From Klebsormidium nitens (Eukaryota; Plantae; Klebsormidiophyceae), in the NCBI GenBank assembly GCA_000708835.1, contig DF237544.1, forward strand, positions 1 to 53,265: 53,265 bases of DNA, given 5' to 3'. The notes beneath the pieces were generated by a model, which did not search any database, was not told the DNA's origin, and was given only the letters and a program-made list of their open reading frames with translations. This document shows positions 1,173 to 46,443 of this stretch, piece by piece. A program made the position numbers and the translations under genes. How positions within the stretch are numbered: the stretch's first letter is position 1; the number at the start of each line of letters is the position of its first letter.

Positions 1173-3327
1173 ATGGAGTTCTTGAGGAGGTGTTCAGGCT
1201 TGACGCGATTTGAGGAGGAGTTAGTTGCTCAGAGTAGGAGGTTGGTAGGAGAGGCTATTGGTCTTGGGGAGAGGATTTCACTTCAGGTTTCCAGAGCCAC
1301 CGGAGACGCTGTTGTTAACGGGTATCAGTCTATCTTCTCTCCTGCCCCTCTCTCGCAGTCTCCTTCTCTTGCCACCAGCCAGGATGACGAGGTCCTCGCA
1401 AGCAGCGCCCTTCTCCAGGAGCAGCACACTTGCGAGGAGACCTCTGAGACACAGGGACCTGCGCACACTCATGATCCTTCTTTTGACCTGGTCCCTGAGT
1501 CCTCATCCTTGGCTCTTCCTGGCTTGGCTGGCGCACTCCCCTCGTCGCCTCCTCTTTCCAGCAGCCAGGACATCTCCGCTCACAGCCCTCAGCTCGCAGA
1601 GCAGCAGACTCTCAGAGAGGACAAGTCAGATGCGCAGGGACCTGAACAAAAACACGACGCTTCTGAAGTTGCGGTCCCTGCTGCTCTTGATTACGAGCTG
1701 GTCTCCTCTGCACTGCTTGCAAGTAATGACGTGTCCAGTCCGCTGTTTGAGCGAGGTCTGTTCGGAAGCGCTGAGGGGGCACTGCCTGTAGGTGGGGAAG
1801 AATCCTTTGATAGGGAGGAGGGTTCAGGCAGTGTGGGGTCTCAGGAGTTGGTTTTGGCAGAGCCGAGCGAGGCGGCCTGCCGTGTTGAGGAGCTGGAGGG
1901 ATGGGAGGTTGATCATGGGGATGGGGCTGGGGGTGCGGTTTTCAGAGGCAGGGAGCAGGGCAGCACAATCCAGGACCTTGACGTGCAGAGCCTCTCCCGC
2001 ATCATGAGCTGCTTGGGGAACGCCTCCCTCCAGGCCTGCTCTCTGGTGTGCCGCGAATGGCTGGTTGTTTCCAACGACACCAGAGACTACTTGACTCTGT
2101 GTGGAGGCCCCCAGGTTGCCAGACTTCCCAGGATTGTCGCCCGGTTCTCTGACCTGCGCTTCGTCATGTTTAAGGATCTCGTGAGAAGCTCAGGGGAGGG
2201 CCAAGGTCTTGTGACAGCCAGCCTGGATGACGCGTCACTTCGGTTGCTAGCACAGAGCTGCCCGCGTCTTGTCCGCCTGAGTCTGGTCCACTGCGGTGTC
2301 GTCTCAGATGAGGGGCTGGCTGCTGTCCTGACGGGATGTCTGGAGCTACGAACGCTGCGCTTGGATCGCTGTGAGGGGTTCCGCGGCAAAGCCTTCGAGG
2401 GGGTAAAGTGCAAGTTGGAGGAGCTCTGTCTGTTCTCTTGCACTGGGCTGAAGAACATCGGCCTCTTGGCAGCGGGAAAAGCGTGTCCCGCGTTGCGAAC
2501 GTTTGATCTCAGGGCGCAGGGGGAGAGGGCAGACCTGGGGGCAGGCCTCAAAAGGGTGGCGTGGCACTGTGGGAAGCTTGAAAAGCTGTTCCTGCAAGCC
2601 TGCGGGACCACAGATCTGACCCTGCGCGAGTTTGCGATCCATTGCCCCCAGTTGACTTGCGTTGCAATTATGAGCGAGCCGGACATCACCGACTCGGGCG
2701 TTTGGTCGCTTCGATGCCACTTGCGGAGCTTGGAGCGCCTCACCCTGTTGAAGAATGACCAGCTGATGGAGATTCCACGCAGCGGGTGAGTACCCTGGAC
2801 AATGCTCAAGGCAAACGTGGCGAGGTGCTTGTTCCACTTAGAAGTCATGATGGTGCCAGCTTGATGTTACGAGCCCTCTTATCTGCTCGATTTGCTGTAG
2901 CTTTCTCGTGGGTGAATTCGCTGGCCTCTCAGCTGCCCTCTCTGGTGCATCTTGGTTTTTTATGCTCAAGTTAGATTCTTCATTACATTGCAGGCGGTTC
3001 CTGCGACTGAAGAGCCTGGGGATCGGGCGCTTCTCTCGCACGCCCGACGACATGCTGCGACGGCTCGCAAAAGAGGCCAGCTTGGAAGACCTGCGGATCA
3101 TCAGCTGCCGTACTTTGACGGATGCCACAGTTAGGAAGATCCTTCTTGATTGCCGCCACCTCACTCGCTTCGTCATTGCGGACTGCGAGCTTGTGACGTC
3201 AGAGATTCTAACGGCTTACAAAGAAAGTAACAGTAAGGCGCGATTAATAATCAGGGATTGCAAGGGCGTGCTGGCGGAAATGGTGCCTGCAGAAATGCTG
3301 TCTTCAGGCAAAGTTGTCTTAGAGTAG
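1173..3327 (+). CDS. F-box/LRR-repeat protein (FBXL-A), join(1173..2785,2994..3327), 648 aa, with a ~270-aa Ser/Glu/Pro-rich N-terminal extension
   Basis: F-box-like LDVQSLSRIMSCLG..LQACSLVCREW followed by Cys-containing LRRs (CPRLVRLSLVHCGVVSDEGL, CPQLTCVAI..ITDSGV). Donor GG|GTGAGT at 2786 and acceptor TTGCAG|G at 2993 join both ORFs in frame. Confidence 0.9.
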
Positions 3328-5099: not shown

Positions 5100-8000
5100 C
5101 CGCTTGCCGCAGCCTCTGATGGGCCGCTTCCGTCTCCCCACCCAGTTGTCGCCTCGGCAAAGTCCGCTTCACTCGGGCAGATGGCCCGCTTACCAGCCGT
5201 GGACGTCTGCGTTTAGCAGGAAAAGAGGTCATGAAATATTGAGCAGACAGCGAGGTGACTAGAGCGCACCGCCAAAATCCGCAACAGCTTCCGACATATT
5301 TCCAATTCATTTCGCCCGGTTGCTGGCTCCAGGCGGGCTGGGAGTGGCAAAAAGACTGCCGCGAAGTTCCGCCAACAGAGAACTTGAGCAATTTTCAGAC
5401 TCTTCGCAACGCTGAAGGACGCGTTTCATGCACTTGACTAGGATTCTTTGCTGTTAGAGCTCGAGGCTATGGCTAAAGACAGGCGCCATTCCTGAATGGT
5501 CTAAGAGCAAAATAAAGAAGAGTAAGCCTGCCAGAGTACAAAGCGATTATGTGTTTTAAGATTGTAGTTCAACCCATACAAACGGTGCGGCCAAAAACGA
5601 ACCTGGATGATTCGAAGTCCCAGAGTCCGAGGGTTTGCAAGAGAAGATTTGAGGGGCTCAATCTCGTGACCGCTTGCTTTCGAAGAGCGTATTCTAAAGG
5701 ATAGATCTTGCAGAAAGTGAGAGACGCGATTTGACGCACCTTGGTTGAGGCTTCGATGGGTGGAGTAAGTGCAGTCCTGCGCGCGCTTTCGGGGCCACCG
5801 AGCAGCTCATGGAGCCGCTCCAGCTGCAATTGCGGATGCACAATCAGAGGTAGAAGTGGGTGGAATGTATCATTGGAGGCTCGGCTGCATGAGCGACTCG
5901 TTGCTTGCTCGGCATACCAACATTAGATCCAAGTTACGTAGACCGAAGCCGTCATAGGACAGCACGATAAGATCGCTTACGAGATACTCTCAGAATTCGA
6001 AGAAGGGACGGCGGAGCCCACCTCGAGAATCAGGTCGGGAAGAAAGGGCGCCGCGGAGGGTATCTGCTCACAGGATAAAGAAGAACTCAAGGGGACATCA
6101 ATCGGATGATAGAAGCGTCTGCGTTTTGCGACAAGACACAGAACAACAGCTGCAAGGATCAAAGTAGGAACCAGACAATGTGTGGCCGACACCGTCAAGG
6201 GACTCTCACTCTACGCACGTATCATAGCAGCGCAAGCAGTTCAATGTATTGGTCCAAGAGATTACGATGTGACATGGTTTTGTCATTAGGGGCGTCTGGG
6301 AGGAAAGAAAAGTTGGTGTTCAAGCGAGGGCAAGTGGCTGCTACTGAAGCTTGTACGCTGGCAACAAGGTTCAGAAGACCGGCTCGCCACAAGTAGAGGA
6401 ACGAGTTTCGGGCTTAGCTCCCTTGCCTGAGCTTGAAGGTCAGCCAACAACCGCTCGATGTGATCATTGGCCACTTGGATCTGCACAGGCCACGGCGGGG
6501 GTTAGCACAGGGGCACGGCGGTTGTGTTTGAAAGTAGCCCGCGCAATATGCTCTGTCAATGGACTCCACTACATCTTGCAAGGGGCAAAATGACGTCACT
6601 CCGTGCTCTTCTGACGCCCTCGGGCATAGAGACGCACCTACTGAGATGGAGGGTCTGGACGGGGATGTTATATGTAGGAGGAATGTCAAGTTATGCGGTT
6701 ATGCTTCGGCTTTGAGACGACAAGTCTTACCTGGGTCGTGAGATGGCAGACCTGGTCGTGCAACCTCGCCTGCAAGAAGCGAGGCGCCCAGAATCAGAGC
6801 AAGCTCCTAAAAACCATAATTCATGGACTTCTCAACAGATCAGGAACCGCGATTCAATAAGCAAAGTTCTCTTTCATCAGAGAAGACTGTTCAGCAGACC
6901 CAGGATCTGTGATTCATGGCGCAAACCACCGGCTCGCCTCCTTGACTGAATTTGCGGTGATGCAACCTAACATTGAAGAGGCCGCCCTGCAGGATAAGCA
7001 AAGGCTCGCAGTGTTTGCCCGCGAGCAGCGGGACGGTCGCCAGTGACTCGCCGTCAGGAACATGATTGAGGTCGACAATAGCAGGAAATAAGCAGATAAG
7101 AAACTTGCCTCCCGATCGCCAGCGGACATGTTCTGCAGAAGGGTCATCTCCTCTACCCTCTGCGGAGATGAGAGGGAAACAATTGAGTGCTTGAAACGAG
7201 AACCGAAACGAGCGATGGCAGGAAGGATCGAACAACCTAGCCGTGCCAGGGTCGAAGGGTTTCCTTATTGGTCTGACTCCATACTTCCGCGCGAGTCAGG
7301 TTGCCACATATTGGTCTTTAACAACGACCCGGCTCGAATCAGTAACCGATTCCCAAAAATCAAGTGCAACATAGAAAGGAGGAGCAGCTCTACGGTGCAC
7401 CTAGTCGGACTGCGCACACAATCCTTCCACAAAGGTAGGGACGCGCTGTCAGGTGCCGACCTGCTTCGCACGCTTGAGCTCGTCCTTCTTGACCCGCAGC
7501 TCGCTCTCCAGTGTGGCCGCTTTCTCCCGCTCCTCGTTCAATTGTTCCTTCAGGAAATTCCCGACAACCAGCAGCCGCCTCTCTGCCGACTCCGCGGCCG
7601 CCGTGGCGTCATTCGCCTTCGTCTACGAAAAAGCAACGGCAAACAAAGGTTATCTGCGGAACCGAGAACGACCGAAACAGGAGAAGCACCAAAGGTTGAC
7701 GTTTGACGAAGTAGCAGAAGGCTCACAAAACCCAGTGCAGTCGCCTTTTCATTGATGACAGAATACGTAAAAGGCAGCGACCAGGTTTATAGCACCCGGG
7801 GGATCCCCCAAAGACAGGCGCCGTGCGTTCCGCTCACCCCAAGGTCCGTTGCCAGCTGCCTCATATCGGACAGTTGCAGCTGAATTTGGTCAGGGGTGGC
7901 GTCTGGCAGCTCTGCAGAGGCCTCGGTCAAGGCGGCAGCTTCCTTGAGCTCGCGGGTCAGCTTGATGACCTGCCGCACAGGGAGCGAGAGCGCAATTTTG

Positions 8001-11000: not shown

Positions 11001-12480
11001 CTCCTCACGGACTTATGCGGTACTCCACATTTCACTCCTGTTCTCACCTTCGTTTCTGCGGCCGCTGCAGCCTCCGCTCTGCTGACGACCGCCAGCGCCA
11101 GCTCCTCCTCCCGCGCGGCCGCCTCGCGGCTCTCGGCTTCCAGCGCGCGAATGGCTTCGTCCGCCGCCGACCGCAGGCCCGCGCGCGCGACTTCCACGTG
11201 GTTCAGGCGCGCTGCCAGCTCAGCGCGCTCGTGGCTCTGCGCCGCGACCTTGGTTTGCAGCTGCTCGATGTCCTGGAGCAGCCGCGCGTTCTCTGCGAGC
11301 GCGGTCTCCAGCGCAATCTGCTGCTGGACGAGGTCGACGGGGTGGGATGGAGACGCGGGCCCTGGAGTTGCCTGCTGAAGGATCAAGGAGATAAATCAGT
11401 ATCAAATAAAATTACCCAGGGTTTGCGGAATTGTTTTTTGCCATTTTTTCCATTATGGTGACCTTCAGTTCGGCTGTTGCATAACTATCAGCTACCTCTC
11501 GACCATGGCGCAAGCTTCTCCGTTTGCGTTTTATATAAGTTGTGCTTCAACTGCTCCTCGCCGGATCTGAGCACCAGCTTTGTTTGTCCAGGAACTGACA
11601 CGTAAGCATGATCTGGACTGGCTGCGTCCCCTTGACCGAGTCTTCCCTCGCTAATCTGCAATGACAGATCGAGCATGCGATGGAAGCTCTTCTGCAGGGC
11701 CTCAGAGCAACTTTCAAAAACACTTTACAGAAGTGCCACCAAGGCAGTCTCCCACCGTCACTCAAGCCGCTAGCCGTCTACCCACCTGCCGGTTATCCAT
11801 AACCTTGATTAACCAGCCCTGTCATGTTTGCCTAGCACAGCAAAGGATGCAAGCAGGGCCATCTGCTGACACCGAAACATGCAGGCACCACTACACTTCT
11901 GTGAACCGACTATTGACTTTCCCGTCGCCCTGACCCAGAATTGAGTCTGCAACGCGACTCTTGAAGCGCAATCTGGGCTGACGTATGAGGCGCACCTTCT
12001 GTTCCGTACCTGAGTTGTCGAGGCGCCCTTTTTCCCGACCGTCGCTCCTTCCTCTTGCGCAGCCACCCCGTTCGCGCTGCACAGTTTCTTGTTGCCCATC
12101 CGTCGCCCAGCGTGGCCGAACTCGAGCTCCCGCCTAGCGGGGGTGTCCTTGACGGGGGTGGGCTTGACGGGGGTGGGCTTGACGGGCGCGTGCTTGGCGG
12201 GGGTCTGCTTGGTGCTGAGGTTCTTAGGGGGGGGCTGCAGCTGCCTGAAGGGGTTTGCCCCTGCTCTCTCCACGCCTGTCCGAGGGGTCGACTTCTCCAC
12301 CGCCGATTTTGAGCGGTTCGAGGAGAGGGGAAGGCGGGAACCGGTGGGGCAGCGGGGCTGTTGGGGAGTGACCTCCGGGCGAGTGGGCTGGTAGGGGGGA
12401 GAGCGCGGTGCGTGGGCTCTAGTCAGGGGCGGCGAGGAGGTGAATCGGTTTGGCACGGGCGGTCTGATGGTGGACTGCAT
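5100..12480 (-). CDS. Multi-exon long coiled-coil protein CC-X with a Pro/basic N-terminus; function unknown; 3' end uncertain (may continue below 5100)
   Basis: Phase-compatible exons read by eye: 12010-12480, 11048-11374, 10460-10716, 9821-9977, 8974-9249, 8261-8629, 7838-7969, 7461-7622, 7109-7159, then small exons around 6732-6770 and 6430-6480 (uncertain), 6022-6063, 5740-5823 and 5100-5206. Ala/Glu/Arg-rich heptad-type sequence. No lesion seen in the exons resolved. Confidence 0.75.
12136..12210 (-). repeat. Five 15-bp tandem units encoding KQTPA-KHAPV-KPTPV-KPTPV-KDTPA in CC-X exon 1
   Basis: Plus-strand units include gacgggggtgggctt x2, gacgggcgcgtgctt and ggcgggggtctgctt. Confidence 0.9.
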
Positions 12481-12849: not shown

Positions 12850-15800
12850 CTTGCATGCAACTCAAGTGCAACTCGAGGTGCCGAAGCGTAACTAGCACCG
12901 TTTTTTGACCTTTCAAGATGAGAGGGCCTGTCTGGGAGGGTCTCTAGGCTGATGATACATTCTCAGTATGAAAGCCTGTCTCAAGAAGTGTCGGAAACTT
13001 CGAACTTTCGCTAGACTGCACAACACAACCCGAATGCTGACCTCCTTTTCAGGCGCTGGGGATACTTGGCTCCCCGTTGGTCTTCTTCCTGTGTAGCTCC
13101 TTCCACTTTCAAATCCTCCCCTGGCTGGCTGCTCCCGTGAGTGCGGCGACAGCAGGGGCTGCTTGTCCTCATCCTGGGTCTGGCATGAAAGAAATAGGTG
13201 TCACTGATTCACCTTCTTGATGCAAATGTTGACTTTCCATGGTTGACAGAGAAGAATTAAGAACGTGATGTGATAATCGAGGGTTTCTCGAAAAGTGTCC
13301 CAATATGATCCGGATGCGTGCTGATTGTCTGTAGCCTACGAAAGCACCATATCAAACTCGACTTAACCTGGGTGGCAAGACTTTCTCTTGATGCTTGTTA
13401 AACAAACATGACCCAGAACTCTGTCTACGAAGGTCGTGGAAGGCCCTATTGATTGGTTCTGACAAGGCAAGCCTTATGAAACCACCTATGCTTGATTCAT
13501 CAGGCAAGACATGCCTCAAGTGGGACAGTACAGGTGTCCTCTTGTCTGGCTTGATAATGACAGCTGTCCCTTCATCCTAGAAAGCCTCTGTCAAGCATGC
13601 TCTCAGGAAGTGTCAATGAAAGGAGCATTGCTTCTTCGCGTACTGCCAGCTGTCAAGGTGGACTTAGTAGACCAGAAACAATCCATCCTGCTTTTCATTC
13701 ACCTTGCCAACAAGAATTCTTGTGATCCGAAAACTCATACGGCGGAGCGCCAGCTGTCGTCTACATTGCCACACAATTCTTTTGGGTTACGTCCCCGAAG
13801 TGCCCCAACCTTCTCACAGCCTCTTTCTCAACCTGGTTTGGACTTCTTCCCACAAGCAGCTTTGAGGACGTTTTCCACTTACCCCCTTGCCAAAACCCTG
13901 CACCGCTGCTCGCATCCTGGACATGCCCTTCTTGAGGAAACCGACGGCCTTGCCTTGGTCCCGTCCATGAGTTGCAAGGGCCACTGGTGAAGCCATGCTC
14001 TGCCAATGATGTAAGGCATTGGTGAGAAGGGGCTTCAAAATCAAGCATGCAACATGCGGAAGTTTCCGCCCTAAGCTTCAGTGTTCTAGTCATGGCAAGC
14101 CATGGCACTGGCGACAATCAAAACAGGCATCTGATGACAACGGAGATCAACAATGCCAAAGTCTGTGTGCATTATCAAAAGGTGACGCCAACCGCTTGGA
14201 TTTCAGGAGTAGTATCACATGCTTCATGTCTGGAAGCAATGCCGTGAACAGTCATGGAAAAGCACTCATTTGCAAGCAAGCGCTCGTGCACATGGATAGA
14301 ACTCTACCTTGAGCCACACATCAGCCTCGAGGCCTGGCTCGCCATTTCTGCCCCCCATCCTCGGCGGCGACTCTTCTTGCTTTCAAAGGCAACTGTCTAT
14401 GTTCAAACCTCCTCAACGTCTCTCATCGGTATTGCGTTAGACGGGAGCAGTACTTGCCGTCTTTCAGCATGTCTTGGTCTTTAAATGCAGCATCCCGCTG
14501 CCAGCAGACCAGCGGTGAACAACTGCACCAACCCGTGGACAAGCTTCAGTTCAGGAAGACCAATGCTGTGGAATGGCAAAGCACATTTGCAGCCAACGCT
14601 CCTGCCTTCTTGCGCCTCAGCCGTGCTCTAAAACCTACTGTAGACATCATGATCAAACGCCTGGCGGGCGATATTGCTTGTTCTCCTGGACCAGCCCTGA
14701 ATCGAGCCGTTGCATGATCGTCAGGGCCAGGGATCCCTGATTAAACGACCGTTCAACGCCGGCACCTACTTTTGTCAAGAAGTAGCGCTTCAGGCTCGGG
14801 AAAAGCAGTGCTGACCGTCCAGCAATTGCTGTTGCCAAGGGCCTGTTTCTCAAGCAAAGCCTTCAAGACGGAGTGCGGCCGGGTTTTGTCACCGCATGCA
14901 TGTATGAGTGAAGTGCTGAGAGCTGGACAAGTCAGCATTCGACGTCGATATTTGCGGGGATCGAAACCTGGTTCACCTCCTGTCCCATTCAACCGCTCCG
15001 TACTTGCCGCGTCGAACCGTTGGTTGTATGGGGATCCCCATGGACTGATCAATTAGATCTGACGCTCCTGAGTCCGATGGCGGGATGAGCTGGCCAGTGT
15101 TTTGTTGCTTATCTTAGTGCTGGGGTCTCCAATGGCGCCCTTTGAAAGTGTCAATCACCAAAGGGAGAAGGAGACCTCTTGCAGAAGTCATTCTTCTACC
15201 CGGTTTCTGCTGACTCACATTGCTCACCACCATTAGACGATCCAACTTCAACCTTTGAAGACAGTTATGCTATGTTGCAGAGAGAACCGATTCCTGCAGT
15301 GGGCTAGTAGGTCTGGTGGCATCGCAGGTGTTAGATGAGATGAGGTGCTTTGATACAGTCCTTTCCCTGATCTTAGTCACTGAAGTGCATCAAGTCGATC
15401 CATCAAATTGAGGAAGCGATGGAAACAGGCCGTCTTTTCTGAACGAAAACCCCTTCAATTCAAAAGGATCTTGCAAGAGGAGTGAGCACAGGACGCAATC
15501 ATTGGAGAAGGTCCCCGAGGTTTCATCTTCCAGGAGCACAGATGGCTTCGACCAGACGGGAATCAGCCTGCACGAGGGTGGACACAGGGTTGAAGGTGCG
15601 CAAAACATAAACGTGTTGTGTCACTCGCATTGAATATTGCGGCTCTTGATGCTCATGACTAGTAACAACAAGCAGAGTGATGGTGCAGACTGTACAAAGA
15701 GACCCTTCCAGGACCCGAGTCTGGAGTGCTGCTTCACCACCGCCTCCGCAAGGCTCTGCCAGTCCTTGAGGCTCTCATCTTGGTCAATCCCCTATTGGAT

Positions 15801-31735: not shown

Positions 31736-31748
31736 TGTGACAGGTGGC
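31736..31748 (+). promoter_or_regulatory. Candidate conserved cis-element TGTGACAGGTGGC upstream of CC-Z
   Basis: About 180 bp upstream of ATG 31929, the same position as in CC-X and CC-Y. Confidence 0.45.
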
Positions 31749-31901
31749 CTTCTTGTTGGACTTGAACGTTTACTCCCACGAGTTTCATCGGGAGTTGCTG
31801 TAATTAAATGCTGCCAGTAAATACTCAAGAAGATACTTCAATAACTGTCTCGCAGAATACTTTGACATACTACGCTTGTCTGTATCTCTTCACATTATAT
31901 T

Positions 31902-34900
31902 ATGGTCAACTTAGACTCTCTTGTGAATATGCATATCTGGTGCCCTTTTCGTCCGGACTTCTGCCAGCCCCTGCTTCCCTCTTTCTCGCAGCAGCGCAGC
32001 ACGCCCCTTCGCGTTGGCCCCCCCAGCCGCCACAGCAGAAGCTCCTTGGCTGCCCACCCCCACTGCACCCACGCAGCAGAAACCCCCGGAGAAGCAGCTC
32101 TTTCAACAAAGCGGACTCTGTCATTTGTGCCAGCGCCAGCACAGCTCGACGACGCGTCCGCACCCCAGGGGCCCACGCTGAGCAGGTCTGCCGGAGCTGC
32201 AGAAGGAGAAGAGGCGATATGGCCGCCGCACCATGGGGTACAGGTAGGTTAGCCAAGGAAACTCCTCAACCCTGCGATGCAAAGAATGGTTCTCCGTTCT
32301 GCGCGCACCGCTTGCTGCTTGCTGCTTGTGCTATGGGACGACAGCTAGCAGCACGTGTATGGTTACCTCGGTCAGAAAGATTGGCAGCTTGAGGAGGCTC
32401 TATTTTATGCGCGTGGCATCAGAAAAAGAAGGAGACTGTGACTTTTGGATTCATTCCGGATATGTGAGCCTCAAAATAAGACGGGATAGCTCAAAAAAAT
32501 ATGTGAATTCATTCCTTTGCAGGGATCGGCGGTGGCGGCCAAGCAGACCAAGAAGCAGATGGGAGACGTACACATTGCGGGAAAGCAATTGGCACAGGTC
32601 GATCCGGGTCAGGCAAATGTGAGTTTTATACCTTGGCATCAACTTTGAACGTCATCAGTGAACCACTGCATGTGTCCAAGCAAAGGCTTGCTGAAAGCTG
32701 GATGTCGTTTGGGGCGGTCCTGATAGGAAAATCTCGCTGTTGGCGGAAACAGCTTTGGGAGCTCCGTCAGAACGACGCAGCTTGAGATACAATTGCAAGA
32801 AATCAAAATTTGCGCCAAGCCAATCAACACAGACTCGGCCAGACCCATGCGTAACCTTTTGTGTACAGGCCGCCTCCCTCGCCCCGTCGTCCCCTCGCTC
32901 CCCCCTCGACCTCTGCACGCCTCAGACTGACGTCAGCAGAGCGGTCGCCGACTCGCCCCCGGTCCCCGCCACTGCGCAGCAGACAGGAGCCAGTGGAGAA
33001 GCCGACGCCAAGCACCGCGCGCCCCTCGAGGCGAAGCTCGCGCAGGCGCAGGCGGAGCGGGCCACGCTGCAGGCGGCGCTGGAGAAGGTGGAGCGCGCAC
33101 TGGACAGGGAGCTTCGCGCCGGGGTCACCTTGGAGCAGGGCTTTGCGCGCGCGCTCCAAGGAAGTGTGAAGACGGTCGAGGCTGCAGAAGCCGAGGTGAG
33201 AGCGGCGGACGATCTTCGTCGGAGGAAACCGCCGGTGAATCTGGGCTCCCTTACCTTGAAAACCTCACAGTTCCGGTTGACTCGACATATGCTTTCCGAC
33301 TTTGTTGGTTTGCAGCACTGGGCTGTAATATCCAACTGAATTTTCTTGATCGGTGTTGGCTGAGAGCAGACTGGGAGCGGGTGTTTGAGAGGCATCGTCT
33401 CTTGTTCAGGTTTCAGAAAGATGAGCCGTTTTGGAGTCGGAAGCAAATAGCTGTTTCATGCTGGGCTAGATGACGGTCTCCAGGGTAATGATGCTCTGCT
33501 AAGATTACGTAACGTGCATTCGGAGAGAATCTGCAAAACTTTTCGTTGTTGCCTGCTCAGGATTGCTTATCTATCATACGCTTTGGTCACGTAAGAAAAA
33601 GGACCTAAACTGCTCGTTAAGACATGTTTATTCATATGTGCAGGTTTAAAGAAAGCCATACGGTGCGGCAAAGAAGTCGCTCCGCCTTTTCTAGCAAATA
33701 TCGCGGCCGCCCCTGGAGTGAGTACGACGGAAGAGGGAAGAAGAGCGTTGGGTGTCGTCACTTTCGCAGAGCTTGTATCAACATGTGTCATTTGGGAAAA
33801 GAATCTGCATTAATCAACGGCTGCTTAGATTTTCGTTGAGTTGTCAGCGCGTCGAGGTTTGTAATAGACCGCTGAGTGGGGTTTTCCCTCCTTTGCAGTG
33901 CGCAACGAGCGGGACGACGCGGAGGCGCGTGCCCAGGCGGCGCTGGAGAGCGCACGCGCGGAGCTGAGCATCGCCGCTACTGAGAAGGAGGAGGCGCAGA
34001 CGCGCGCGCGGGCAGAGGCGCTCAAGCGCCAGCAGACGGAGGCAGAGGTGGGCTCTAGTGGATGGTAGTCCCTTTTGTCATGTGCGCAACCTGAGCCGCT
34101 GAGGCAAATCTTTGCTGTTTTAGAATTGGTTTGAAGTCCTCTAGCACGGTGCGAATCATAAAACGATCAGTTGCCGAACCCGATTCCTGCAGATCCTTCT
34201 CGAGTCAAGCTCTGGACTTGCTCTTACTCAGAAAATGCAGAGCATAGCACTGGAAGGCCCATACTTGAGGGTCGAATCATAAAAAGACTGTTTGACTCGT
34301 CCCTTTGTGGGCGAAATGCGTTCACACATGGTCATGCTTGAATGTGCTCGCACAATTTCTTTCTGATTGTCTCATGTATAATGCTGGCTATTCCTCGAAC
34401 GACGAGCGACTTTTCAGCTGGCAACCCGTTTTATTCCTGCCCATCAACAACTGCGTACTGCTGATGTCCAAAAGGAAGAGCGGCCAATCCACAGAAAAAC
34501 AAGCTTTTCAACGACGTTGTCCCCTGACGACATCAGAACGCCCTCTGACGTCATCAAAACGCGCTACTGGTCTATTTTGCGTCCAGGTCGAGAGCATGGC
34601 CCGCGAGTGCGCGGCTCTGCGCGCCTCCCTGACGGAAGAGCAGGCAGCGCGGGCTGCGGCGGCAGAGGGAGCGGAGGGCGAGCGCGAGCGCGGCCGCGAG
34701 GACGCCGACGTGGCGCTGCACGCGTCCGCCGAGACCATCGCGCGGCTGGAAGGAGAGTTGGCGCGCGCGCGGAGCGACGCGGCGGCTGCGGCATGCAAGC
34801 TGGAGGAGGTGGCGGCCAAGGTAAATATCCAGGGCCCACGAGCAGTGATTTGCCTTCCAAACAGCAAGTTTACGTCTATTTACAAGCTTGGAGCACTTAA

Positions 34901-37900
34901 CCGGTGCAAATTCAGCATTTGTGCCTCCACTACAGTCACTCACTTGCAAACTATCATTTTTGCTTTGCCGACAAGACGCAACGCAACCTTGTAGAAAGAT
35001 TTCCCCGTCTTTGATGAAATTCGCAGCATGCCTTTCTCGCTCTCCCACGTACGCGCTTTCCACTTGCAAGCGTCGGCATATCACTTGGGTCATCACTTCC
35101 TTTGCTTTCGGGGTTCGCGAGGCTCGACCACGAGTCTTCATTTACACAGCTTCTGATCACCCTCGTCTCCCTCCTGTAGGCGCAAGCGCTCGCCACACAG
35201 CTCGAGCAAGCCCAAGTTGCAAGCCGCCAGTCCCTCGCCGACGCCGCCGCAACTGCGTCGAAAGAGCGCGCATCGGCCCGCGCGCTCGTTGCCGCGGCAG
35301 AGGCGCGGCTTGCCGCGGTCGACAAGAAGGCGGCCGCCGCTGAGCAGGAGGCGGCTGAGGCGCGCGCACTCCTGGACAGTGAGAAAGCGCGAGCGACGCT
35401 TATGGAGGAGCAGCTCGAACAGGTGAACGCGATTGGAACCGGCCTTCTTCCGGGCAAAATTGGTTCGGAGCATCCCCACGAGAGACTTATTGCAAGGGCC
35501 TGGAACTCCACAATTTTGCGAAGCAAGAGAAACCCTTTGCGGAATGAATACGGCTTTGAAACCGCATCTTCCATTCCTGACTGCTCATTAGGACAAGAAA
35601 CACGTTCGGACAGATTCCCGCAAAGACATCTCATTGAAAAGCTGTCAGAAAAACGGAAGACAACACTTAGCTCTGCTTCGTTTCTAAAGTGTTCGAGTCC
35701 CGACGTCACCAGCGCTTGGAAGAAGAGAAGAGCGAAGTCAGTTCGCAAAACAACCGTATGCTGAATAAGAGCTTGAGTTTCTAAAGGGCTAGGAGCTTCC
35801 GACATACATGCGACGTATATTTCAATTGTTTTTACTCTTCTCCGACAAACATCACGAGCTCTCTATCTGACGCCCAGGTCTTCTTCGAATGGGCTTTTTG
35901 CGAAAACGTCGGATACAAAAGCTTGAAATTCTTGATGCTTTTCGCAGTTGGAAGCTCGCCGCTTGGAGGCCCTTGAGCTTGCAGAGAAGGAGGCCGCGCG
36001 GCTCGCGCAAGTGGAGGCAAGCTTGGTCCAGACCGAGGCTTCGCTCGCGCTCGCGCGCGGTGAGGAGGCGAACGCGCGCGCGCAGGAGCGCGAAGCAGAG
36101 CTTGTCAAGGAGATCGAGGAGCTGCGCGCCGCCGAGGTCAAGTGGACGGAGAGCAACGCGCGGTTGGAAGCGGAGATGGGCAGGTGAGGGTTCCAAGCTT
36201 CTGCTTTTCCTTCAAAAGCATCCGTTGGTTTGTCATGAAGCAACAAGAGATTCGGCCGCTCTTCGTGCACGCAAATGATTCTTGAGATGAAACATTGATC
36301 CGCAGCTTTCAAATTGAAGCAGAGTGAAAGGATTCGGCAGAAAGATTCTCAAGACGAATAGTATCCCGGCAGGTAAAGCGAAAGTGCGAAGTCTCTTTCA
36401 CTTTGCAAAAGACACAGAGAGCAAAATGAATTGTTAAGAGAAACTCGAGAACTGGTGCAAACATCCTGCAAAGGATGCTCGTGTGTTACTGCGAGTCTTG
36501 CGAAGGATGATGTCAGTTCCTTCTGACCAGCAACACATCGAACGGCATCCAGAAGTCTTGCGGTCCATTACTGAAACATTTCTTTGTTGTTCAGGCGCCT
36601 GAAGGCCGACGCCAAGGCCTCGAACGAGGAGGCGCGGCGCCGCAAGGTGGAGCAGCGGCTGGCGGACGGCGAGAACGCGCGCGCATACCTGGAGAGTAAG
36701 CTCCGCGAGGCAGAGGGCATAACGCGCGCGGCGGAGGCGGCCTGGGAGGAGAGCGAGGCCAAGAGGCAGGCGCTGAATGACGTGAGAGAGCACGGAGCGC
36801 TAGGTTTGGGCCACGTGTCACGGGCCTGAATAGCGATGAGACTCTTGGAAGTGTACAACGGATTGATTTGTCTGAGCCTTAGAGACATACGGGCTCGGTT
36901 GGCGCAAAGAGAACTCCTACCGGAGCCCTTTTATGTGCTTTGGAGTCAAAATCTCTTCCTGCTTTTGGCCAGGGCAAGTCACACTTAAACAACGAAGAAG
37001 CAGTCAAAGCGGCTCGAGGTTTTTGATGTGTTTCTTCCCTCTTTGTCGGTCATTCCTCTCCGGTCGTCAGCCAAAGGCTTTTTGTAAGCTCGACGCCGTC
37101 GCCACGACTTAGAGCCTGATAACTCGCCCAGGACAAACGTTTGCTTTGCTGGTGATTATTCGCAGACGCGAAGGTTCTGGCTGGCCGCAGATTTCTCCCT
37201 GCATCATTTCAACCGTGAAGCTGTCTTACGACGTTTCCGGCCTTCTTGCAGGAACGCGGCCAGTGGAAGGTCGCTGAGTGCAAGCTCGAGGAGCAGGCCG
37301 CGAAGCGCGAGGCTGCAGAGTCGATGGTGAAGGCCGCGACCGCGCGCGCCGAAGACGCGGAGCGGAAGCTGGAGGAGGCCCGGGAGCAGCTCGCGCACAA
37401 GGTCAGGACCGGACGTAACGCCAGACTTTTCTTATTAAATGTTGCAGACTTTCTGTTTGGTCGTTATGCACTTCTGCTTCTTTCACATTGGAGGTTTACT
37501 TCACAGTTGATGATTGAACCTAGACCTATTCGGTCAGGGGAAGTTGGATACCTAGCTGTGATTATCGGAATAACATCAGAAACATTCTTCTGTAAGTAAG
37601 GTGAAATTCCATGAGGAACAGGGGCGTACAGTTCTCTTGTTCTCTCATGTAGGACTCTGCGAGGTCCATAACAGTGAGATCTCTAAGAGCCCATACGGCG
37701 AAAAGTCAACGACTCCAGTCGCACCCTACTGCTTAACAACTGATCAAGCCTCTCCTTACGCCACGTGTCGCCATCTGCAGGTGACCAAGAGTACCCAGTC
37801 CCTCACCGCGAGCAGCGCCCGCGTCGCCGAGCTGGAGGCGGAGCTGTACCGGGCGCGAGCGGCCCACGTGGCCCTCGAGACCAAGTGCGCGACGGCGGCC

Positions 37901-40900
37901 GCGCGCGTGGCTGAGCTGCAAGAGACCGTCGCCGATAAGGAGGCGGACATTGCGGAGGGGAGCCGAGTGATCCAGGAACTGATGGCGCAGCTGAGCGAGC
38001 TCACCTCCGATAACATAGCGGAAGAGCGGCGGCTGAGGGACGAGGTGACGCGCGCGCAGGCGGAGGTGAGGACGGTCGACCTCCTAAAGGAGACGTGAGG
38101 AACTCGGACTGCGAGCGAGGACGATGAACTTAGAAGAGAAGCATTTTTGGCGAAGTGAATGGTCAGGATGACAAGGGATTGCTATTTGTACTTTACGGTT
38201 CGTAATTCACGGGAGACTCGGAAAACGAAAGAAGGCGGAACAGAAAACGAATGCGGAGACTTCATCATCTGAAATTATTGCGCTAGCATTGGCACGCTGA
38301 CTTTCTCAAAGACATAAAAGCAACATTACTTTGGTCTATCTCTCTTCTTATTTATGCGTGTACATTAAAACCGCCTTCCCTGGATAAGCATTCCGGGCCT
38401 TTCCGGTCCTGTAGCCTCTGAATCATTGCAAGCATTGCGAGGACCCACCGCTACTAGCACTATCCTGTACGAACCATCTTATCATTTCGCCAGCAACTAA
38501 TTCTTCTACGTTCTCTACAGGTCGCCAAGCTGAAGCGCGCGCTGTTAACGGCTCAAACCGCCCTGAAGAAGGCTTCCGCGCACCCCTCCAAGTCTAACGA
38601 AGAGCTGGAGCGGGAGAACTCGAAGCTCAAGCAAGAAAACACGAAGCTGCAGGTAAGCTTCACTGCTCAGCATCCTGTCCTTTCACACCTGCCAATCGAG
38701 GTAGCTCCAAACCCTTCAGCGATCCCCGACCACGAACCCTGGCGTCCTTTCAACTTCGCTTCAACTGGATTGTTGTTTCGGCGACCTCCTCTTGTTTTCT
38801 GTTTTGTTCTCTTGTTTCTGAAGAAGCGCTTTTGTGTCGAAGTCTATTCTGCACAGCCCATATCCGCACCCTGGCGTTCTGTCAACTTCGCTTCAAATGG
38901 TATGCTTGTGTCTGCAACCCCCGAGTGTTCTCATTTTCCCCCCCTTGTTTCCGAAGAAGCGCCTTTCTGTCGAAGGGTTTTCTGCACAGCCCATATCCGC
39001 GCTGTCGCGTCTGCAGACGGCGGCTGACGTGGCAGCGGTCGCGGATGCCGCGGATCGGCGCGCATTCAAGGCGCACCTGGAGACCGAGCGCGAGCACGGG
39101 GAGACGCTGATCGAGCAGCTGCGCGTCAAGAACGAAGAAGTGGACAGCCTGGAAGCGGTCAGCGCACGCGCCTTTCTCATATTAGCGCTTTGCTGTGAGT
39201 GCTTTGCTCCAGGCGTACCAAGAGCTGGGCGAATGCCGAGGACCCGAACGTGAGCCGTTGGGAAATTTGATACGTTGCGCTTTACCCTTGGAGGATTAGA
39301 TTGAGACCGTCTTAAGTGCCCGAAAACTTAAAATCAGGAGTTGTTATGACATGAGACTGGCATGAGACTTGCATAAGGTTTGTGGGGAAAGCTAGTGGTT
39401 CCCTGAAGGTCCGGGACTTTCGATCTTGCCTTCCGTGACTGACGTTCATGCCTCAAATCTTTTTTCCTGTCCTGCAGGAGGTCCTGTTCCTGAAACAGCA
39501 GCAAAATGAAACCTCCAACTACCGGGAGGTGAGTTGCACGATTCACCGTGTACTTTTCCGTCGTTCTCAACGAGTCTTTGCCGTCCTTTGCTGTCACCCA
39601 TTTTGCTGCTGTCTTGGTATGAGCGTGTGTCGAATCGTCAACGGACGCCAAATACTTCGGCTGGCGCCTCTGAACATGTTTCGTTTAAGAGCAGGACCGA
39701 TGCAATTGCTTTCGTAAGCGGAGCACCGCATCCATTTGCATCATCCTTTGTTCCTCGCGTACACGCCGCGGCTTTCTGGACCGCTTGATGTGGACATATC
39801 CCAGCAGATTTTGCAGATAAGTGTGCTTGAGCCCGCAAGATGGCCTATCTTTTTTCCGTTTCGATCTTCTGAGCCGCGTCGATTCTTCGATATCATGCAG
39901 TTGCGCGCGTACACTATGTTGCACGAGCTGGGGGGCAAGGTGAGAAGCGTTCTTGAACCTTCGATTAAATCCGCAATCCTTCCTTTGATTGAATCCGCAA
40001 TCCTTCGTTCGTCTCAAGGCTTTCAGAAGTTTGACAAGCAAGTTGTGCATGATTAGATGGGCGCGCGCACGAACTTTTGGATTTGAGAAGTGGCAATACT
40101 CTCTCGAAGCCAAGGTCGCCTTCGTTGCCACGTCCAAAGTAGACATTGCACTTCTTTCGAATCTTGTTGATTGCGGCGTACGTTTTCCCATGTGCTGATG
40201 ACCCTCCTGGTTTGCTTTCCAGATGAACGAGATCCGCCACAAACTGACCCAGTTGCTCGTGTCCTTTCAAGAGCCCGGAGTAAGCACCTGCCTTGATGCT
40301 GTGCTTAGGTCTTAAGGAACCGTTGTCTCACGCAGAACAATACCTCAGTGCGTGGTTTTCTCCCAGGAATCTTAGTTGATGCATGGTGCCCCGTATCTTA
40401 GCCAAAGTTCCTAAACATTGCAACTGTCTCTTGGGCAAACTTTGTCGCACTTTTTCCAACCAGGACAAAATGCCAGCAAGGACTTCGTTTGATCTTTTCG
40501 TTCATCGCGTCAAAATCAGCTCCGAATGATTGCGCCTCCGAAGGTGTTGCATGACATTTTAGCGTCCCGTCACGTGGTTTCAATGAGCGTGTTGAAGCGT
40601 GCCTTTTTACCATGCTTTCGTCTTCTCTGCAGCCATCTTCCGCCCACTCCCTCGCCTTCATCCACGACGAGGTGAGTGCTGCCTCTCTCTGAGGCCGTAC
40701 TTCCGTCGCGCTTCTGAATCGCTTTACAGAACCGTCCAATTCCGTCCGCCTCCTCTTTGCGACCAAGCTTTCGCTCAGCAGCAGCTTGCCCGAGGAAGGG
40801 CACCTGCTTCGCAAATTGTCGGAGGCTCGTATGGACTAGATCAACACTTGCTGCTGGGGACCTCTTGAGCAAGAGCTCCGACAAGGGCTTTATCCTATGA

Positions 40901-42787
40901 TCCTTCACATGGGTTGAGATAGCCTTCCGGAAGTTGCTATATCCGAGAAATATTGCAGCATCGTTTGCTCGAAACCAACAGTCCTTGTCTTCGCCGACGA
41001 CGAGAATGGGCAACGATTTCGCTTGAAACACAATGACTCGGTTTTCAAGGTCTAAGTTGAAGTTCCCCATGATACTTGTTAAGGACTGCCCCTTATATAT
41101 CGTGTGCCTGCGACGAGTGAACGCATCATGCGTTCACTTGTCGCAGGCACACGATATCCAATACTGTTCGGAAGCTATCGCCTTATGATGGAAAGTGGTG
41201 GAATCTAGACAGGCTATGCATTGGAAGCGTGCATGTGACATGAGCAAAAGACTTCTTCAACAATCGGCATCATGGAAGGTTGTTGGATTAGAAAGCCAAT
41301 ATATACACGCGGTTGAATATTACTTACCGAAAAATTCTACCGCTCAATCAACTCGTCGAACTCCTTCGACAATTCCTTCCTCGCTACCATGTACTCAGTG
41401 ACACAGATACATCGCCTCCAGTTTCTCTGAATGCGACTCACAGCACGCCTTTGACGAATCACGATGTACGCCAATGCATTCCTGATTTGAGTCCACTCCC
41501 GAATGTATGCACCATCGTAATCCCTAGTCAGATACCCCCAACGTGACCATGTCACTTTTCTATTCTGTTTTTATGCGCAATTGAACCCCTAGCGTGTGCT
41601 CTGCGAAGCTTTGATCTGGAAGGCTTGGAGCTGCCAGACGGCAAAAGGGTAATTTACAGTGGTTATGCAGATGATACAACTTTATTTCTCTCCGGAATTG
41701 AGGATCTCTCGCAGGCTATCCCCATCTTTAACAAGTACGCTTCCGTTCTTATCCGTTGCAGCACTGCAATCCCTCCCTGCCGTTGTCAGCGGTTTTTCTT
41801 TCGCCGGTTCCGTCTCCTGATCGAGCACGCACGCTGTGCAGCTTGCGCGCCTGCGCGCCTCCCTAGACGCCGAGCACGAGGAGGACATGGACGTGGCGGG
41901 CCCTAGCTCTTCCCATCCCCCGGTACGTCGCCCGTTTCCAAAATCACTCTTCTGGTGGAGATGTGTGTGCGTGTTGTGCTCAGTGAGAAAGACGCATCTA
42001 CAAAAGCGCTGCTGCCTGCGAACATTTGGTAGCTTGTGCCAAGCATCGAGCGGATGACACGTCATTAAAGGCAACAAGCGAAAGACACGTCATCAATAGC
42101 ATCGGGCAGATGACACGTCATCAAAAGCGCACCTCACACTGATTCAAATGGACAGCAAAAACGACGCGCTTAACTGGATGCATTTACAGCCTCTGCCGAC
42201 CCCTCTCTGGTTGTGACTATTGGGGGTGTTTACCTCCCTCTGCAATTTCAATCGTCGCCTGTGATTGCCAATCGTAGTTCGCGTCTGGCAGGGCCCCTCA
42301 GAATAGCTGCCCGTCCACGGTAGAGGCCCTTCGTGAAAGTTTTGGCTTCATTTCCTCTCGGCCTTACCATGAGCTTGCTACTCTTGTCAGGCCTCTCCGC
42401 AGCAAGGGGCGCCGGATAAGTCGGTCAACGACACAGAGGTTGGCGACTGCGGCCTCACCGGCTGGGGGGAAGTGGACGATGCGATTGTTCTGGTGGATAC
42501 CGGGTGAGTAGCAAGAAATGCTGCTTTTTGCCGTGAACCACCGCGAAAGCGTCGGACGTTATCATCCTGTTGCCTCTACAAGTAATTTCAAACATCGAGT
42601 TCCGGTCGGCTGTCGGCTTCGAGCAATCACCGTGTGTTTCGGCGTCCGGACGGGGGGCTAATGAAGCTCGTCGTCCGAAACCGTATGATTGCGTTAGCGC
42701 CGTCATTTCCCCGTAATAACGCTGAGCACTGACATTTAATTAGTTGTTTCCTATCTCCACAGATCCGACGCCGTGGATGCGGCTTAG
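31902..42787 (+). CDS. Multi-exon coiled-coil gene CC-Z (paralog of X and Y); possibly disrupted by loss of a 73-nt exon
   Basis: Exons 31902/31929-32243, 32869-33195, 33899-34047, 34587-34820, 35180-35422, 35948-36183, 36595-36781, 37252-37401, 37781-38064, 38521-38652, 39017-39157, 39478-39528, small exons ~39901-39939 and ~40222-40278, 40633-40671, 41842-41922, 42391-42503, 42763-42787 (TAG). Phase mismatch between 33195 and 33899. Confidence 0.7.
38737..39000 (+). repeat. ~132-bp intronic tandem duplication
   Basis: ccctggcg..caacttcgcttcaa..gaagaagcgc..tcgaag..ttctgcacagcccatatccgc occurs twice (starts 38737 and 38869). Confidence 0.85.
40864..41070 (-). pseudogene. Truncated Bro-N (baculovirus repeated ORF N-terminal) domain gene of probable viral origin, inside a CC-Z intron
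   Basis: MGNFNLDLENRVIVFQAKSLPILVVGEDKDCWFRANDAAIFLGYSNFRKAISTHVKDHRIKPLSELL matches the Bro-N pattern (W-F-x-A-x-D-[VA]-A-x-x-LGY-x-N...AI..HV...K.L.EL). The C-terminal half (INE.GLY.LI) is missing. TATATAA lies ~23 nt upstream of the ATG. Confidence 0.8.
41097..41157. repeat. 61-bp near-perfect inverted repeat (30-bp arms, one mismatch, 1-nt centre)
   Basis: atatcgtgtgcctgcgacgagtgaacgcat-c-atgcgttcacttgtcgcaggcacacgatat. Confidence 0.95.
41337..41555 (-). pseudogene. 5'-truncated intronless ORF resembling small proteins of large algal DNA viruses (IQRxWR...KxLxxEFxEL C-terminus)
   Basis: ...RQRRAVSRIQRNWRRCICVTEYMVARKELSKEFDELIER*. No ATG (starts at GTG next to the LINE fragment). The family resemblance is from memory and has not been searched. 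Confidence 0.5.
41562..41745 (+). mobile_element. LINE (L1/Tx1-like) reverse-transcriptase fragment
   Basis: ILFLCAIEPLACALRSFDLEGLELPDGKRVIYSGYADDTTLFL..DLSQAIPIFNKYAS contains the LF...EPL and YADD motifs of non-LTR RT. Confidence 0.85.
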
Positions 42788-44299: not shown

Positions 44300-46443
44300 C
44301 TATCCAATGACTACCTTGCCTGAGAGCCGCACCTCAGCAGGCAACATCTCTTTCTGGACGCCCTTACACCCTCTTATTTCTACCCGCGCCTTGGTACCGC
44401 TTTCTGCATAAGCTTTTAGAATCTCTGAGGTTACAAGCTCGCAGTTTGCGATAAGAAGACTCCTAAGTTGATGGCACCCGAACAATATCTTTCTAACGGT
44501 GCGATCCGTCAAAGCAGGGCACCTAACTATGCGCAAGTTTTCCAAGCTCTGTTCCTCTGCAATCTGCTGCAGCATTTGATCGGTTGCGCGGTCAAACCGG
44601 CCAACGCCCAATTCTTTCAACCGCAGGTACCGCCTGCAACATAGGAACAGTGAATAAGAAGGCAGTCGAAGAGATCAGCAGAGAGCCTTGACAACAAGTC
44701 CTATGCAATCTTACCAGGAGCACAAGAACCTCATCCGTCTTAGTTTGAATCATCAGATTGAGGCAGAGCAGAAGAGGATCTTGACCAGCAGGCTGCAGAT
44801 CAAAGACATTTTGATTGAACGCTGCTGCCGACAGCTCGAAGGGATGGGACTTACCCGCTGCGCGGAACCTGCCAGAGCTGACTGTTGTCTAATAAAGTAA
44901 GATGATCAAGACGACGCAGGCGACACCGGAGGATCGCAACCCCGCCGTCGGTGATGCCCGGCTCGCTCACGATGCGAATGTCAGCCAGCAGGGGGCAGTT
45001 TCCAGCAAAGCGTCGCAGGGTGGTATCAGTGATGCCGCAAGCTATGGCAGTAAGCTTTTCTAGGCTGGGGCAGAGCAATGCCACCTTCTCGAAGCCAGCG
45101 GCCAAATCGGTAACCTGCCCCTCCCTCCTGACTGTGAAGTGCCGGAGCTTGGGGCATGCCGATGCTACTGCCCCAACACCAGCATCCGTCAGCCCACTGC
45201 AGTAATGCACGTCGAGCTGCTCGATTGGACACTGGACCCCCTCAAACGCTGCCCCGCTGAACCCCTCGCAGTGGTCCATGCGCAGCGTTGTCAGCTCTGG
45301 ACACCGCCTCAGAACAGTAGCCAGCCCCTCATCTGAGACGACACCGCAGCGGACCAGAGTCAAACGGAACAAATGGGGGCAGCTCTTTGCCAGCAAAGCC
45401 AGCGACGCATCACTCAGGCAAGCTGGCACAGTCCCCTGGAGCTCTAAGCCTTTTCCAGTGTCCGTGAGCTGAACAAAGCGCAGGTCAGCGAAGCGCAAGA
45501 GAATCCTAGGAAGGGAGGCAACTCGGGGCTGTCCTTGCAAGACCAGGGTGTTTCTAGCGTAGTTGGAAGCGTCGAGCCACTCGCGACACACCAGAGAGCA
45601 CGCCCGGATGGAGGAGTTTCGCAAGTGAGAGAGTATCTTGGTCAGGCAGTGTATGTCGAGATCCAGAATCGTACTGCCTGACACAAGAGCACCCACAGCC
45701 CCAGCCCTCTGATCCACCTCCACCCCCTCTACCTCCTCGCTGTGGCAGGCTGCCCCGCTCAAAAGTACCTCCTGAGTCCTCCCACTGCCTGAGCCCTCCT
45801 TCCCCTCAAAATTCTCTTCCCCACCCACAGGCAGTGCCCCCTCAGTGGCCCCACACAGAACCCGCTCATGCAGACTGGACAGGACATCGCTCGCGTGCAG
45901 CACAGAGGAAACAAGCTCGTAGTCAAGAGCAGCAGGGACCATATCATCAAACGCTTCCTTTTTTTGTTCAGGTCCCTGCGCATCTGCTGTGTCCTCTCGG
46001 GGTATCTGCTGATCAGCGAGCTGGGGGCTGTGAGCGGAGAGGTCCTGGCTGCTGGAAAGAGGGGGCAACGAGGGGGGAGCGCCAGCCAGAACAGGAAGAG
46101 CTGAGGATGAGGAGTCAGGGACCAGGTCGAAAGAACCATCCTGAGTCTGCTCAGGCCCCTGACCCTCGTCGCAGGTCACCTCGCAAGTGTGCTGCTCCTG
46201 GAGAAGGGCGCTGCTTGCGAGAACCTCGACATCCTGGCTAGTAGCAAGAAGAGGAGACTGCGAGAGAGGGGAAGGAGAGAAGATGGACTCGCATCCCTCA
46301 ACAACAGCGTCTCCGGTGGCTCTGGAGACCTGGAATGCTATCCTCTCTCCAAGAGCAAAAGCCTCTCCTACCAACCTCCTACCCTGAGCAACTAAGTCCT
46401 CCTCAAATCGCGTCAGACGAGAACACCTCCTCAAGAACTCCAT
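44300..46443 (-). CDS. F-box/LRR-repeat protein FBXL-C, exons 44855..46443 and 44300..44633, apparently intact
   Basis: Paralog of FBXL-A: MEFLRRCS.LTRFEE.., F-box LDIHCLTKILSHL..CSLVCREW, LRRs. Donor GG|GTAAGT, acceptor TTGCAG|G, 334-nt last exon. Confidence 0.9.

Follow-up and report, generated by a model that had tools for sequence, protein, structure and literature searches.

Tight linkage of an F-box gene to the gene of its presumed target is known from the S-locus, where SLF/SFB genes accompany the S-RNase gene, and from rice Sa, where the F-box gene SaF accompanies SaM. In the C. elegans peel-1/zeel-1 element, an antidote related to a leucine-rich repeat (LRR)-type cullin-ligase substrate receptor adjoins its target gene and belongs to an expanded family. 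Tandem F-box clusters of plants expand in a lineage-specific manner by tandem and segmental duplication, with gene conversion and frequent pseudogenes. To our knowledge, the substrate is unknown for most F-box proteins and genomic context rarely helps to find it in eukaryotes. Here we describe a two-gene cassette on scaffold DF237544.1 of the charophyte green alga Klebsormidium nitens (assembly GCA_000708835.1), analyzed over its whole length of 53,265 bp and hereafter called the window, in which a gene for a predicted Skp1–cullin–F-box (SCF)-type F-box/LRR substrate receptor (FBXL) faces a gene for an orphan coiled-coil protein (CC). The cassette spread by segmental duplication, after which gene conversion and rearrangement at the level of exons altered its copies, some of which are decaying. 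Its recurring pairing suggests, rather than proves, that the two proteins work together, and the cassette is known so far only from K. nitens.

The K. nitens copies have expanded in the same style as plant tandem F-box clusters but add a constant non-F-box partner in fixed orientation and at fixed distance. Whereas the partners in the S-locus and rice Sa, for which allelic incompatibility is known, are an RNase or a SUMO-ligase-like protein, the K. nitens partner is a predicted coiled-coil rod, and the pair is multi-copy within one genome and known from a single genome. The peel-1 toxin of C. elegans is a small membrane protein, in contrast to the long, soluble rod, under purifying selection, that is predicted for K. 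nitens.

The window holds three pairs in the order FBXL-A> <CC-X, CC-Y> <FBXL-B, CC-Z> <FBXL-C, each coiled-coil gene lying tail to tail 1.3–1.6 kb downstream of its F-box gene. The original prediction, made from the letters of the window, had proposed this layout with the first pair inverted relative to the other two, and the mapped coordinates and strands agree with it. Best protein matches are 100% identical to K. nitens proteins. The genes and the single assembly gap are as follows.

1173-3327, forward strand: FBXL-A (P0001, 648 aa), exons 1173-2785 and 2994-3327, intact.
4621 to beyond 13327, reverse strand: CC-X, deposited product of 968 aa, 5′ end past 13327.
15542-23244, forward strand: CC-Y (P0014, 812 aa, 12 exons), deposited model.
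23321-25597, forward strand: deposited 174-aa gene, holding stranded V-like 3′ exons of CC-Y (23716-23869 and 24142-24363).
27171-29207, reverse strand: FBXL-B (P0009, 523 aa as deposited), frameshifted.
29362-29381, no strand: assembly gap of 20 N, non-coding, between the divergent starts of FBXL-B (29207) and CC-Z (30217).
30217-42787, forward strand: CC-Z (P0015, 1026 aa as deposited), one exon lost.
44300-46443, reverse strand: FBXL-C (P0002, 640 aa), exons 46443-44855 and 44633-44300, intact.

We inspected the neighborhoods of seven of the eight K. nitens members of the F-box family, leaving out P0007, on four scaffolds: FBXL-A, FBXL-B and FBXL-C in the window, FBXL-D and FBXL-E on DF237530.1, P0005 on DF237234.1 and P0010 on DF237124.1. 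Next downstream of all seven lies a convergent gene for a coiled-coil protein with no Pfam match above threshold, at a stop-to-stop distance of 1.1–1.7 kb (A–X, B–Y, C–Z, D–W, E–V, P0005–P0020, and P0010 with a 612-aa gene). All four detectable genes of the X/Y/Z/W type adjoin an F-box gene, while the remaining neighbors vary among loci and include glycosyltransferases, a lipase and a phosphatase. At the loci inspected, the search for linked pairs elsewhere in the genome that had been suggested as a check on the original prediction came out in its favor. Metagenome scans for the same synteny in other organisms gave no match, and a literature search found no description of this gene pair. The constant orientation and spacing in seven of seven pairs is also what would be expected if the convergent arrangement were kept for coupling at the RNA level, with 3′ ends that overlap or interfere and no contact between the proteins; no conservation of intergenic or 3′ sequence is detectable between the older copies, however, and we consider RNA-level coupling improbable.

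The first gene of the cassette is recognizable as a receptor gene at every level of comparison. Self-comparison of the window aligns FBXL-A with FBXL-C at 75% identity over 1664 nt (E=0), and both A with B and B with C at 69% (E about 1e-90). When the deposited proteins are mapped to the DNA, all three genes share one phase-2 intron in an identical alignment column, where it follows the PRSG codons in each, and their last exon measures 331 nt without and 334 nt with the stop, so that this part of the original prediction is upheld by exact mapping. FBXL-A and FBXL-C have two coding exons, and the deposited FBXL-B model has an additional work-around intron near its frameshift. Four further paralogs elsewhere have the same structure, with a slightly different last-exon length in D and H and one further intron in the deposited P0005 model. 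The layout of FBXL-A comprises an N-terminal helix, a disordered linker, an F-box and about 12–13 LRRs. The F-box (PF00646) scores 24.5 bits in FBXL-C and 26.6 bits in FBXL-D against a cut-off of 20.5; that of FBXL-A falls below threshold (F-box-like, 18.1 bits) yet aligns column for column, and the motif is kept in FBXL-B by alignment. Sequence matches in the Protein Data Bank (PDB) include FBXL2 (2.8e-17) and FBXL17 (2.5e-15) as well as TIR1, MAX2 and COI1. The AlphaFold2 (AF2) model of FBXL-C has a helix at residues 12-54, disorder at 55-258, F-box helices at 259-298 and an LRR solenoid of 13 β-strands alternating with helices at a predicted local confidence (pLDDT) of 85-97, and its top Foldseek matches are the FBXL2–SKP1 and FBXL17–SKP1 complexes. 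On this modeling the protein is a predicted SCF-type F-box/LRR substrate receptor. As in human FBXL2 and FBXL17 and plant TIR1, COI1 and MAX2/D3, an F-box is followed by a curved LRR solenoid, but ahead of the F-box the K. nitens family has two additional parts, a conserved helix at the N terminus and ~200 residues of disordered linker, and its first F-box motif is L-D instead of the usual L-P. Protein searches recovered eight K. nitens members and five fragments, and the family was found only in K. nitens and a few other assemblies.

The second gene of the cassette has diverged much further. The 327-nt exons of CC-X (11048-11374, reverse strand), CC-Y (17968-18294, forward strand) and CC-Z (32869-33195, forward strand), taken in the original prediction to be one common exon, do share AG/GT borders (AG and GTGAGA), phase 0 and a gapless alignment, and a fourth copy lies at 11664-11990 of locus L001, on scaffold DF237530.1, in CC-W, a full-length homologue of CC-Z and the neighbor of FBXL-D. 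The 132-nt exon predicted to be common to X and Z is indeed so and is present in W too. The predicted 51-nt exon is clear in CC-Z (39478-39528) and a candidate only in CC-X, and the 126-nt exon predicted for CC-Y exists at about 23726-23851 but lies outside the deposited CC-Y model, within the 174-aa gene. CC-X, which we treated exon by exon, is 29% identical to CC-Z in the 327-nt exon and 33% identical over four exons. Along the gene it nevertheless runs colinear with Z/W, three exons match in length (327, 318 and 132 nt), and the C-terminal motif TGWG[ED] is shared. Sequence comparison thus indicates that CC-X is a distant homologue of Z/W, with the following exons, all on the reverse strand.

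11374-11048, reverse strand: CC-X exon of 327 nt, by exon-by-exon recognition.
8629-8312, reverse strand: CC-X exon of 318 nt, by exon-by-exon recognition.
7969-7838, reverse strand: CC-X exon of 132 nt, by exon-by-exon recognition.
7616-7461, reverse strand: CC-X exon of about 156 nt, by exon-by-exon recognition.
7159-7109, reverse strand: candidate 51-nt exon of CC-X.
About 5188-5100, reverse strand: C-terminal TGWGD exon of CC-X, by the shared motif.

Searches of Pfam with exon pieces and full coiled-coil proteins returned only sub-threshold generic coiled-coil matches, and no relative was found in the PDB. Full-length searches used deposited proteins only, with no joined or read-through models. 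A profile of the 327-nt exon run against 1.84 billion representative proteins retrieved nothing beyond Y, Z, an X-like fragment of 56 aa and two weak matches, and a word search with the CC-Z protein retrieved only Z, W and Y; X, Y, Z and W accordingly form an orphan family. The AF2 model of CC-W is disordered over residues 1-250 and almost continuously helical over 251-873, in helices of 55-153 residues each, which describes a predicted orphan protein with a Ser/Pro-rich disordered head of ~250 residues and an α-helical rod of ~600 residues. At the head/rod junction the motif P-x-S-P-[RS]-[SH]-P-[LV]-[DN]-[LF] (CC-Z, 32884-32913) is kept in X, Y and W, even in divergent X, and is a candidate linear motif for recognition or phosphorylation. 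The family also carries short repeats: a 21-nt tandem repeat of 6.5 copies in a CC-Y exon (22204-22342), whose unit equals one Ala/Glu/Arg-rich coiled-coil heptad, and a 15-nt tandem repeat of 4.9 copies in the N-terminal exon of CC-X (12138-12211), which encodes KPTPV-like repeats in the disordered head. Within the CC-Z intron between the 132-nt and 141-nt exons lies a 133-nt tandem duplication (38736-39000); it is two-copy in CC-W too (L001 about 6954-7221) and therefore predates the Z/W split. At 35423-37251 the deposited CC-Z model has about 140 extra coiled-coil residues without counterpart in the deposited W and Y models, and part of the DNA of this stretch, up to 35954, is alignable to a CC-W intron.

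The copies spread as blocks. A colinear block links the window to DF237530.1 and takes in C/D, Z/W, the 5′ parts of B/E and the 3′ part of Y/V, and within the window the Y block, 15195-21506, aligns to its Z counterpart, 29829-37427, at 73-80%. These paralogous blocks include non-coding DNA and run colinear between loci, as segmental duplication entails. In the F-box tree, C and D are sisters (support 100/99), A together with one fragment joins them (97/94), B groups with P0005 and P0007 (100/100) and E stands alone. Synonymous divergence (dS) is 0.37 between FBXL-C and FBXL-D and 0.45 between CC-Z and CC-W, matching values which indicate that the two pairs were copied together. Paralogs could be mimicked by collapsed or duplicated haplotigs, since the underlying draft, assembled by Newbler from 454 and Illumina data, comprises 1,814 scaffolds and carries Augustus gene models (PMC4052687), and copies sit at scaffold ends. 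We find such an assembly artefact barely credible: at the DNA level the copies are 19-31% different, each with its own introns, indels and neighbors, and their lesions are indels of 14 nt, 22 nt and about 200 nt, not homopolymer errors.

Superimposed on the blocks is a mosaic history. Between FBXL-A and C/D, dS is 0.2-0.3 near the 5′ end but reaches 1.4-2.0 in the LRR half, a pattern that indicates gene conversion of the promoter-proximal half, promoter included. The homogenized 5′ halves compared were 1173-2400 against 46443-45200 and L001 203-1460. By this pattern FBXL-A is a gene-conversion mosaic, and the age of its old LRR half is compatible with the split of X from Z/W (dS about 0.9, probably saturated). 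CC-Y is Z/W-like up to 21506, through the 150-nt exon 21332-21481, with a dS to both of about 0.58-0.60, and its 3′ exons match those of CC-V on DF237530.1; aligned in this way CC-Y is a chimera with a Z-like 5′ and a V-like 3′ part. The FBXL-A gradient and the CC-Y chimera together mark mosaic, concerted evolution. We considered whether (C, Z, B, Y) might be a plain copy of (D, W, E, V) and rejected this, as the F-box/LRR part of B groups with P0005/P0007 and not with E. C–Z and D–W did duplicate together, but the earlier proposal that the pair had duplicated together three times is too simple for a history with the conversion of A, the chimeric Y and the tree position of B. In the comparison of CC with FBXL genes, C–D and Z–W agree in dS, and B and the 3′ part of Y are discordant.

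Decay has affected the pairs unevenly. Compared with A and C, FBXL-B has lost 14 nt at about 28593/28594, which puts its F-box out of frame with the N-terminal region, and the deposited model avoids the frameshift by a splice that brings in about 40 out-of-frame residues. The F-box/LRR open reading frame (ORF; 27707-28726) and the 334-nt last exon (27171-27504) of FBXL-B are open. The claim that all three F-box/LRR cores remain open is thus literally true, although FBXL-B is frameshifted upstream of its F-box. The lesions that had been noted in CC-Y and CC-Z are real. CC-Y has a 22-nt insertion relative to CC-V at about 23130-23151, within an exon whose counterpart in V is open throughout; the insertion leads to an early stop at 23244, and the V-like exons downstream are deposited as the separate 174-aa gene. 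In CC-Z a ~200-nt deletion near 33621-33640 took out a 73-nt exon that is retained in Y (18758-18830) and W; the deposited model bridges the loss with unrelated exons (33645-33713), replacing 35 conserved residues, and CC-Z otherwise keeps every CC-W exon with AG/GT borders. None of the indels in B, Y and Z is of the homopolymer type. The deposited models KFL_005950030 and KFL_005950050, that of FBXL-B and the 174-aa gene are thus work-arounds for broken genes. Pair by pair, A–X looks intact, B–Y is broken in both genes and only the coiled-coil gene of C–Z is damaged; both genes are called intact in A–X, D–W and E–V. With F-box coding sequences taken from deposited products mapped back to DNA, the ratio of nonsynonymous to synonymous divergence (dN/dS) comes to 0.25-0.35 for the F-box/LRR part and to 0.45 for the rod, values which indicate that both families are under purifying selection.

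These data bear on whether the cassette could be a selfish element of the toxin–antidote or gamete-killer type, in which a harmful coiled-coil protein is removed by the linked F-box protein. The gene content invites the comparison, as an E3 ubiquitin ligase adaptor lies tightly linked to a fast-evolving orphan gene in several copies, the linked two-gene unit is convergent at 1.1–1.7 kb in seven of seven pairs, and C–Z combines an intact F-box gene with a coiled-coil gene that lacks one exon. We nevertheless rate a toxin–antidote element as very improbable. The rod has no toxin-like domain, signal or membrane segment by Pfam and its AF2 model (no toxicity test was made), its dN/dS of 0.45 indicates purifying selection, and both genes are broken in B–Y, a decay pattern that also fits poorly with peel-1/zeel-1. 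Joint decay of B–Y likewise does not support the suggestion of an antidote outliving its toxin, which only C–Z fits. What remains of the original idea of an effector with its dedicated degrader is a real two-gene module, supported by the seven of seven pairings and the matching dS of C–Z and D–W, while the toxin–antidote coloring is not supported, in view of the domain content, purifying selection and joint decay.

Why the two genes stay together is the central question of interpretation. Plain co-duplication would hold that they are unrelated neighbors in a fast-duplicating region that have lacked the time or opportunity to separate. The copying of introns, promoters and non-coding DNA along with the genes, the large colinear blocks between two scaffolds, the recombination-prone character of an array with gene conversion and chimeric genes, and the decay of several copies all agree with this, and we regard it as a live possibility, if one rated somewhat under even. 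Less readily explained by co-duplication are the old dispersed paralogs (36-49% identity, dS above 1), which sit on two further scaffolds in different surroundings and are still paired at the same distance, the failure to find, among the loci inspected, any F-box paralog or X/Y/Z/W-type gene standing alone, and purifying selection on both genes. We hold the chances to be evenly balanced that the cassette has instead been kept together because its products cooperate, most simply as a receptor and its substrate or partner. The rod protein would then be a dedicated substrate or partner of the adjacent receptor, bound on the concave face of the LRR solenoid, and the junction motif P-x-S-P-x-x-P-[LV]-[DN] would be a candidate site of recognition or phosphorylation. 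Among older paralogs, exposed concave-face β-strand positions of the LRR domain differ more than the rest of the domain, both between FBXL-C and FBXL-A (59% versus 39%, p=0.024) and between FBXL-C and P0005 (83% versus 58%, p=0.003). This excess fits diverging target recognition but is not proof of it. The stronger proposal, a self-contained module of receptor and private substrate that is inherited, duplicated, diversified and lost together, with concave-face specificity matched in each copy, we consider doubtful.

Several observations weigh against cooperation. Persistent linkage alone is weak evidence, because neighbors are normally copied together and separation needs a rearrangement. The gene trees are not simply congruent, as B falls with P0005/P0007 but the 3′ part of Y with V, which is the neighbor of E. 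No homology to X/Y/Z/W was detected in the neighbors of E, P0005 and P0010 by tblastn, exon hidden Markov models or hhalign (best E=0.012, hhalign probability 1.5%), so the cassette rests there on position, orientation and protein type only, and the P0010 neighbor has only short coiled-coil stretches. Exposed LRR positions are variable in most LRR proteins anyway, and there is no sign of positive selection. If receptor–substrate pairing were true, gene order would be enough to identify the substrates of an entire family, the diverged copies would be a natural experiment in the co-evolution of E3–target specificity, and a streptophyte alga would harbor a family of co-evolving E3–target gene pairs, with or without a selfish or compatibility role. 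If it were not, the locus would still offer a clear case of gene pairs duplicated in segments, altered by gene conversion and decaying together, in an alga that branched off early among the relatives of land plants.

A leader of ~130 nt precedes every F-box start codon, and its conservation exceeds that of the coding sequence. In the window it occupies the following positions.

1030-1172, forward strand: leader/promoter of FBXL-A, conserved, with TTGGCGCCC at 1080-1088.
29208-29361, reverse strand: leader of FBXL-B, equivalent to that of FBXL-A.
46444-46612, reverse strand: leader of FBXL-C, equivalent to that of FBXL-A.

The leader also occurs at L001 about 60-202 and, in loci L006, L002 and L007, upstream of position 10001. 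In six F-box genes the invariant TTGGCGCCC of the leader sits at −93 to −101, and in P0010 at −178; the leader also has a short palindrome, CAAACTT.CA.GAGTTTG. The window has 5 matches to TTGGCGCCC against 0.55 expected; two of these, at 24572 and 52633, show no alignment with the leader and were set aside as chance matches. The core of this element presumably resembles an E2F site, and such a shared E2F-like promoter element would hint at cell-cycle-timed expression of the receptors.

The assembly gap is 155 nt away from the FBXL-B start codon and 836 nt from that of CC-Z, upstream of both. No exon crosses it, no paralog alignment depends on it, and the similarity between A and B stops at 29351, short of the gap. 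Both flanks are colinear with the region upstream of FBXL-E on DF237530.1 (window 28889-29672, 76.7% identity; 83% mean column identity in a second comparison), which supports their order and orientation, and the true length of the gap is irrelevant to the finding. An ORF at 29275-29655 on the forward strand runs through the N positions and was disregarded. FBXL-A starts 1172 nt from the left end of the window and FBXL-D 202 nt from the end of its scaffold (L001 position 203). The assembly seems to break within repeated cassettes, so it may lack additional copies, or the two scaffolds may adjoin each other.

A 166-aa ORF (40570-41070, reverse strand) lies antisense within a CC-Z intron, and its first ~65 residues match Bro-N (PF02498, 31 bits, cut-off 25.6) and phage anti-repressor families. 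The host intron measures 1170 nt in CC-Z against 499 nt in CC-W, so the ORF looks like an inserted fragment of a virus or mobile element; a search of IMG/VR and a phage collection found no relatives. A near-perfect palindrome of 30+30 nt (41097-41157) lies 27 nt upstream of the start codon of this ORF. Rfam and tRNA scans of the window found no non-coding RNA, and no gene is called in 46444-53265. Near the right scaffold end, an ORF without annotation (51883-52200, forward strand) encodes the 14-residue motif SPPRFGY(R/Q)G.HV, which recurs in L002 (19549-20076, reverse strand) in the gene beyond the coiled-coil neighbor of P0005, with 10 of 14 residues identical and a single-comparison E of 1e-5.

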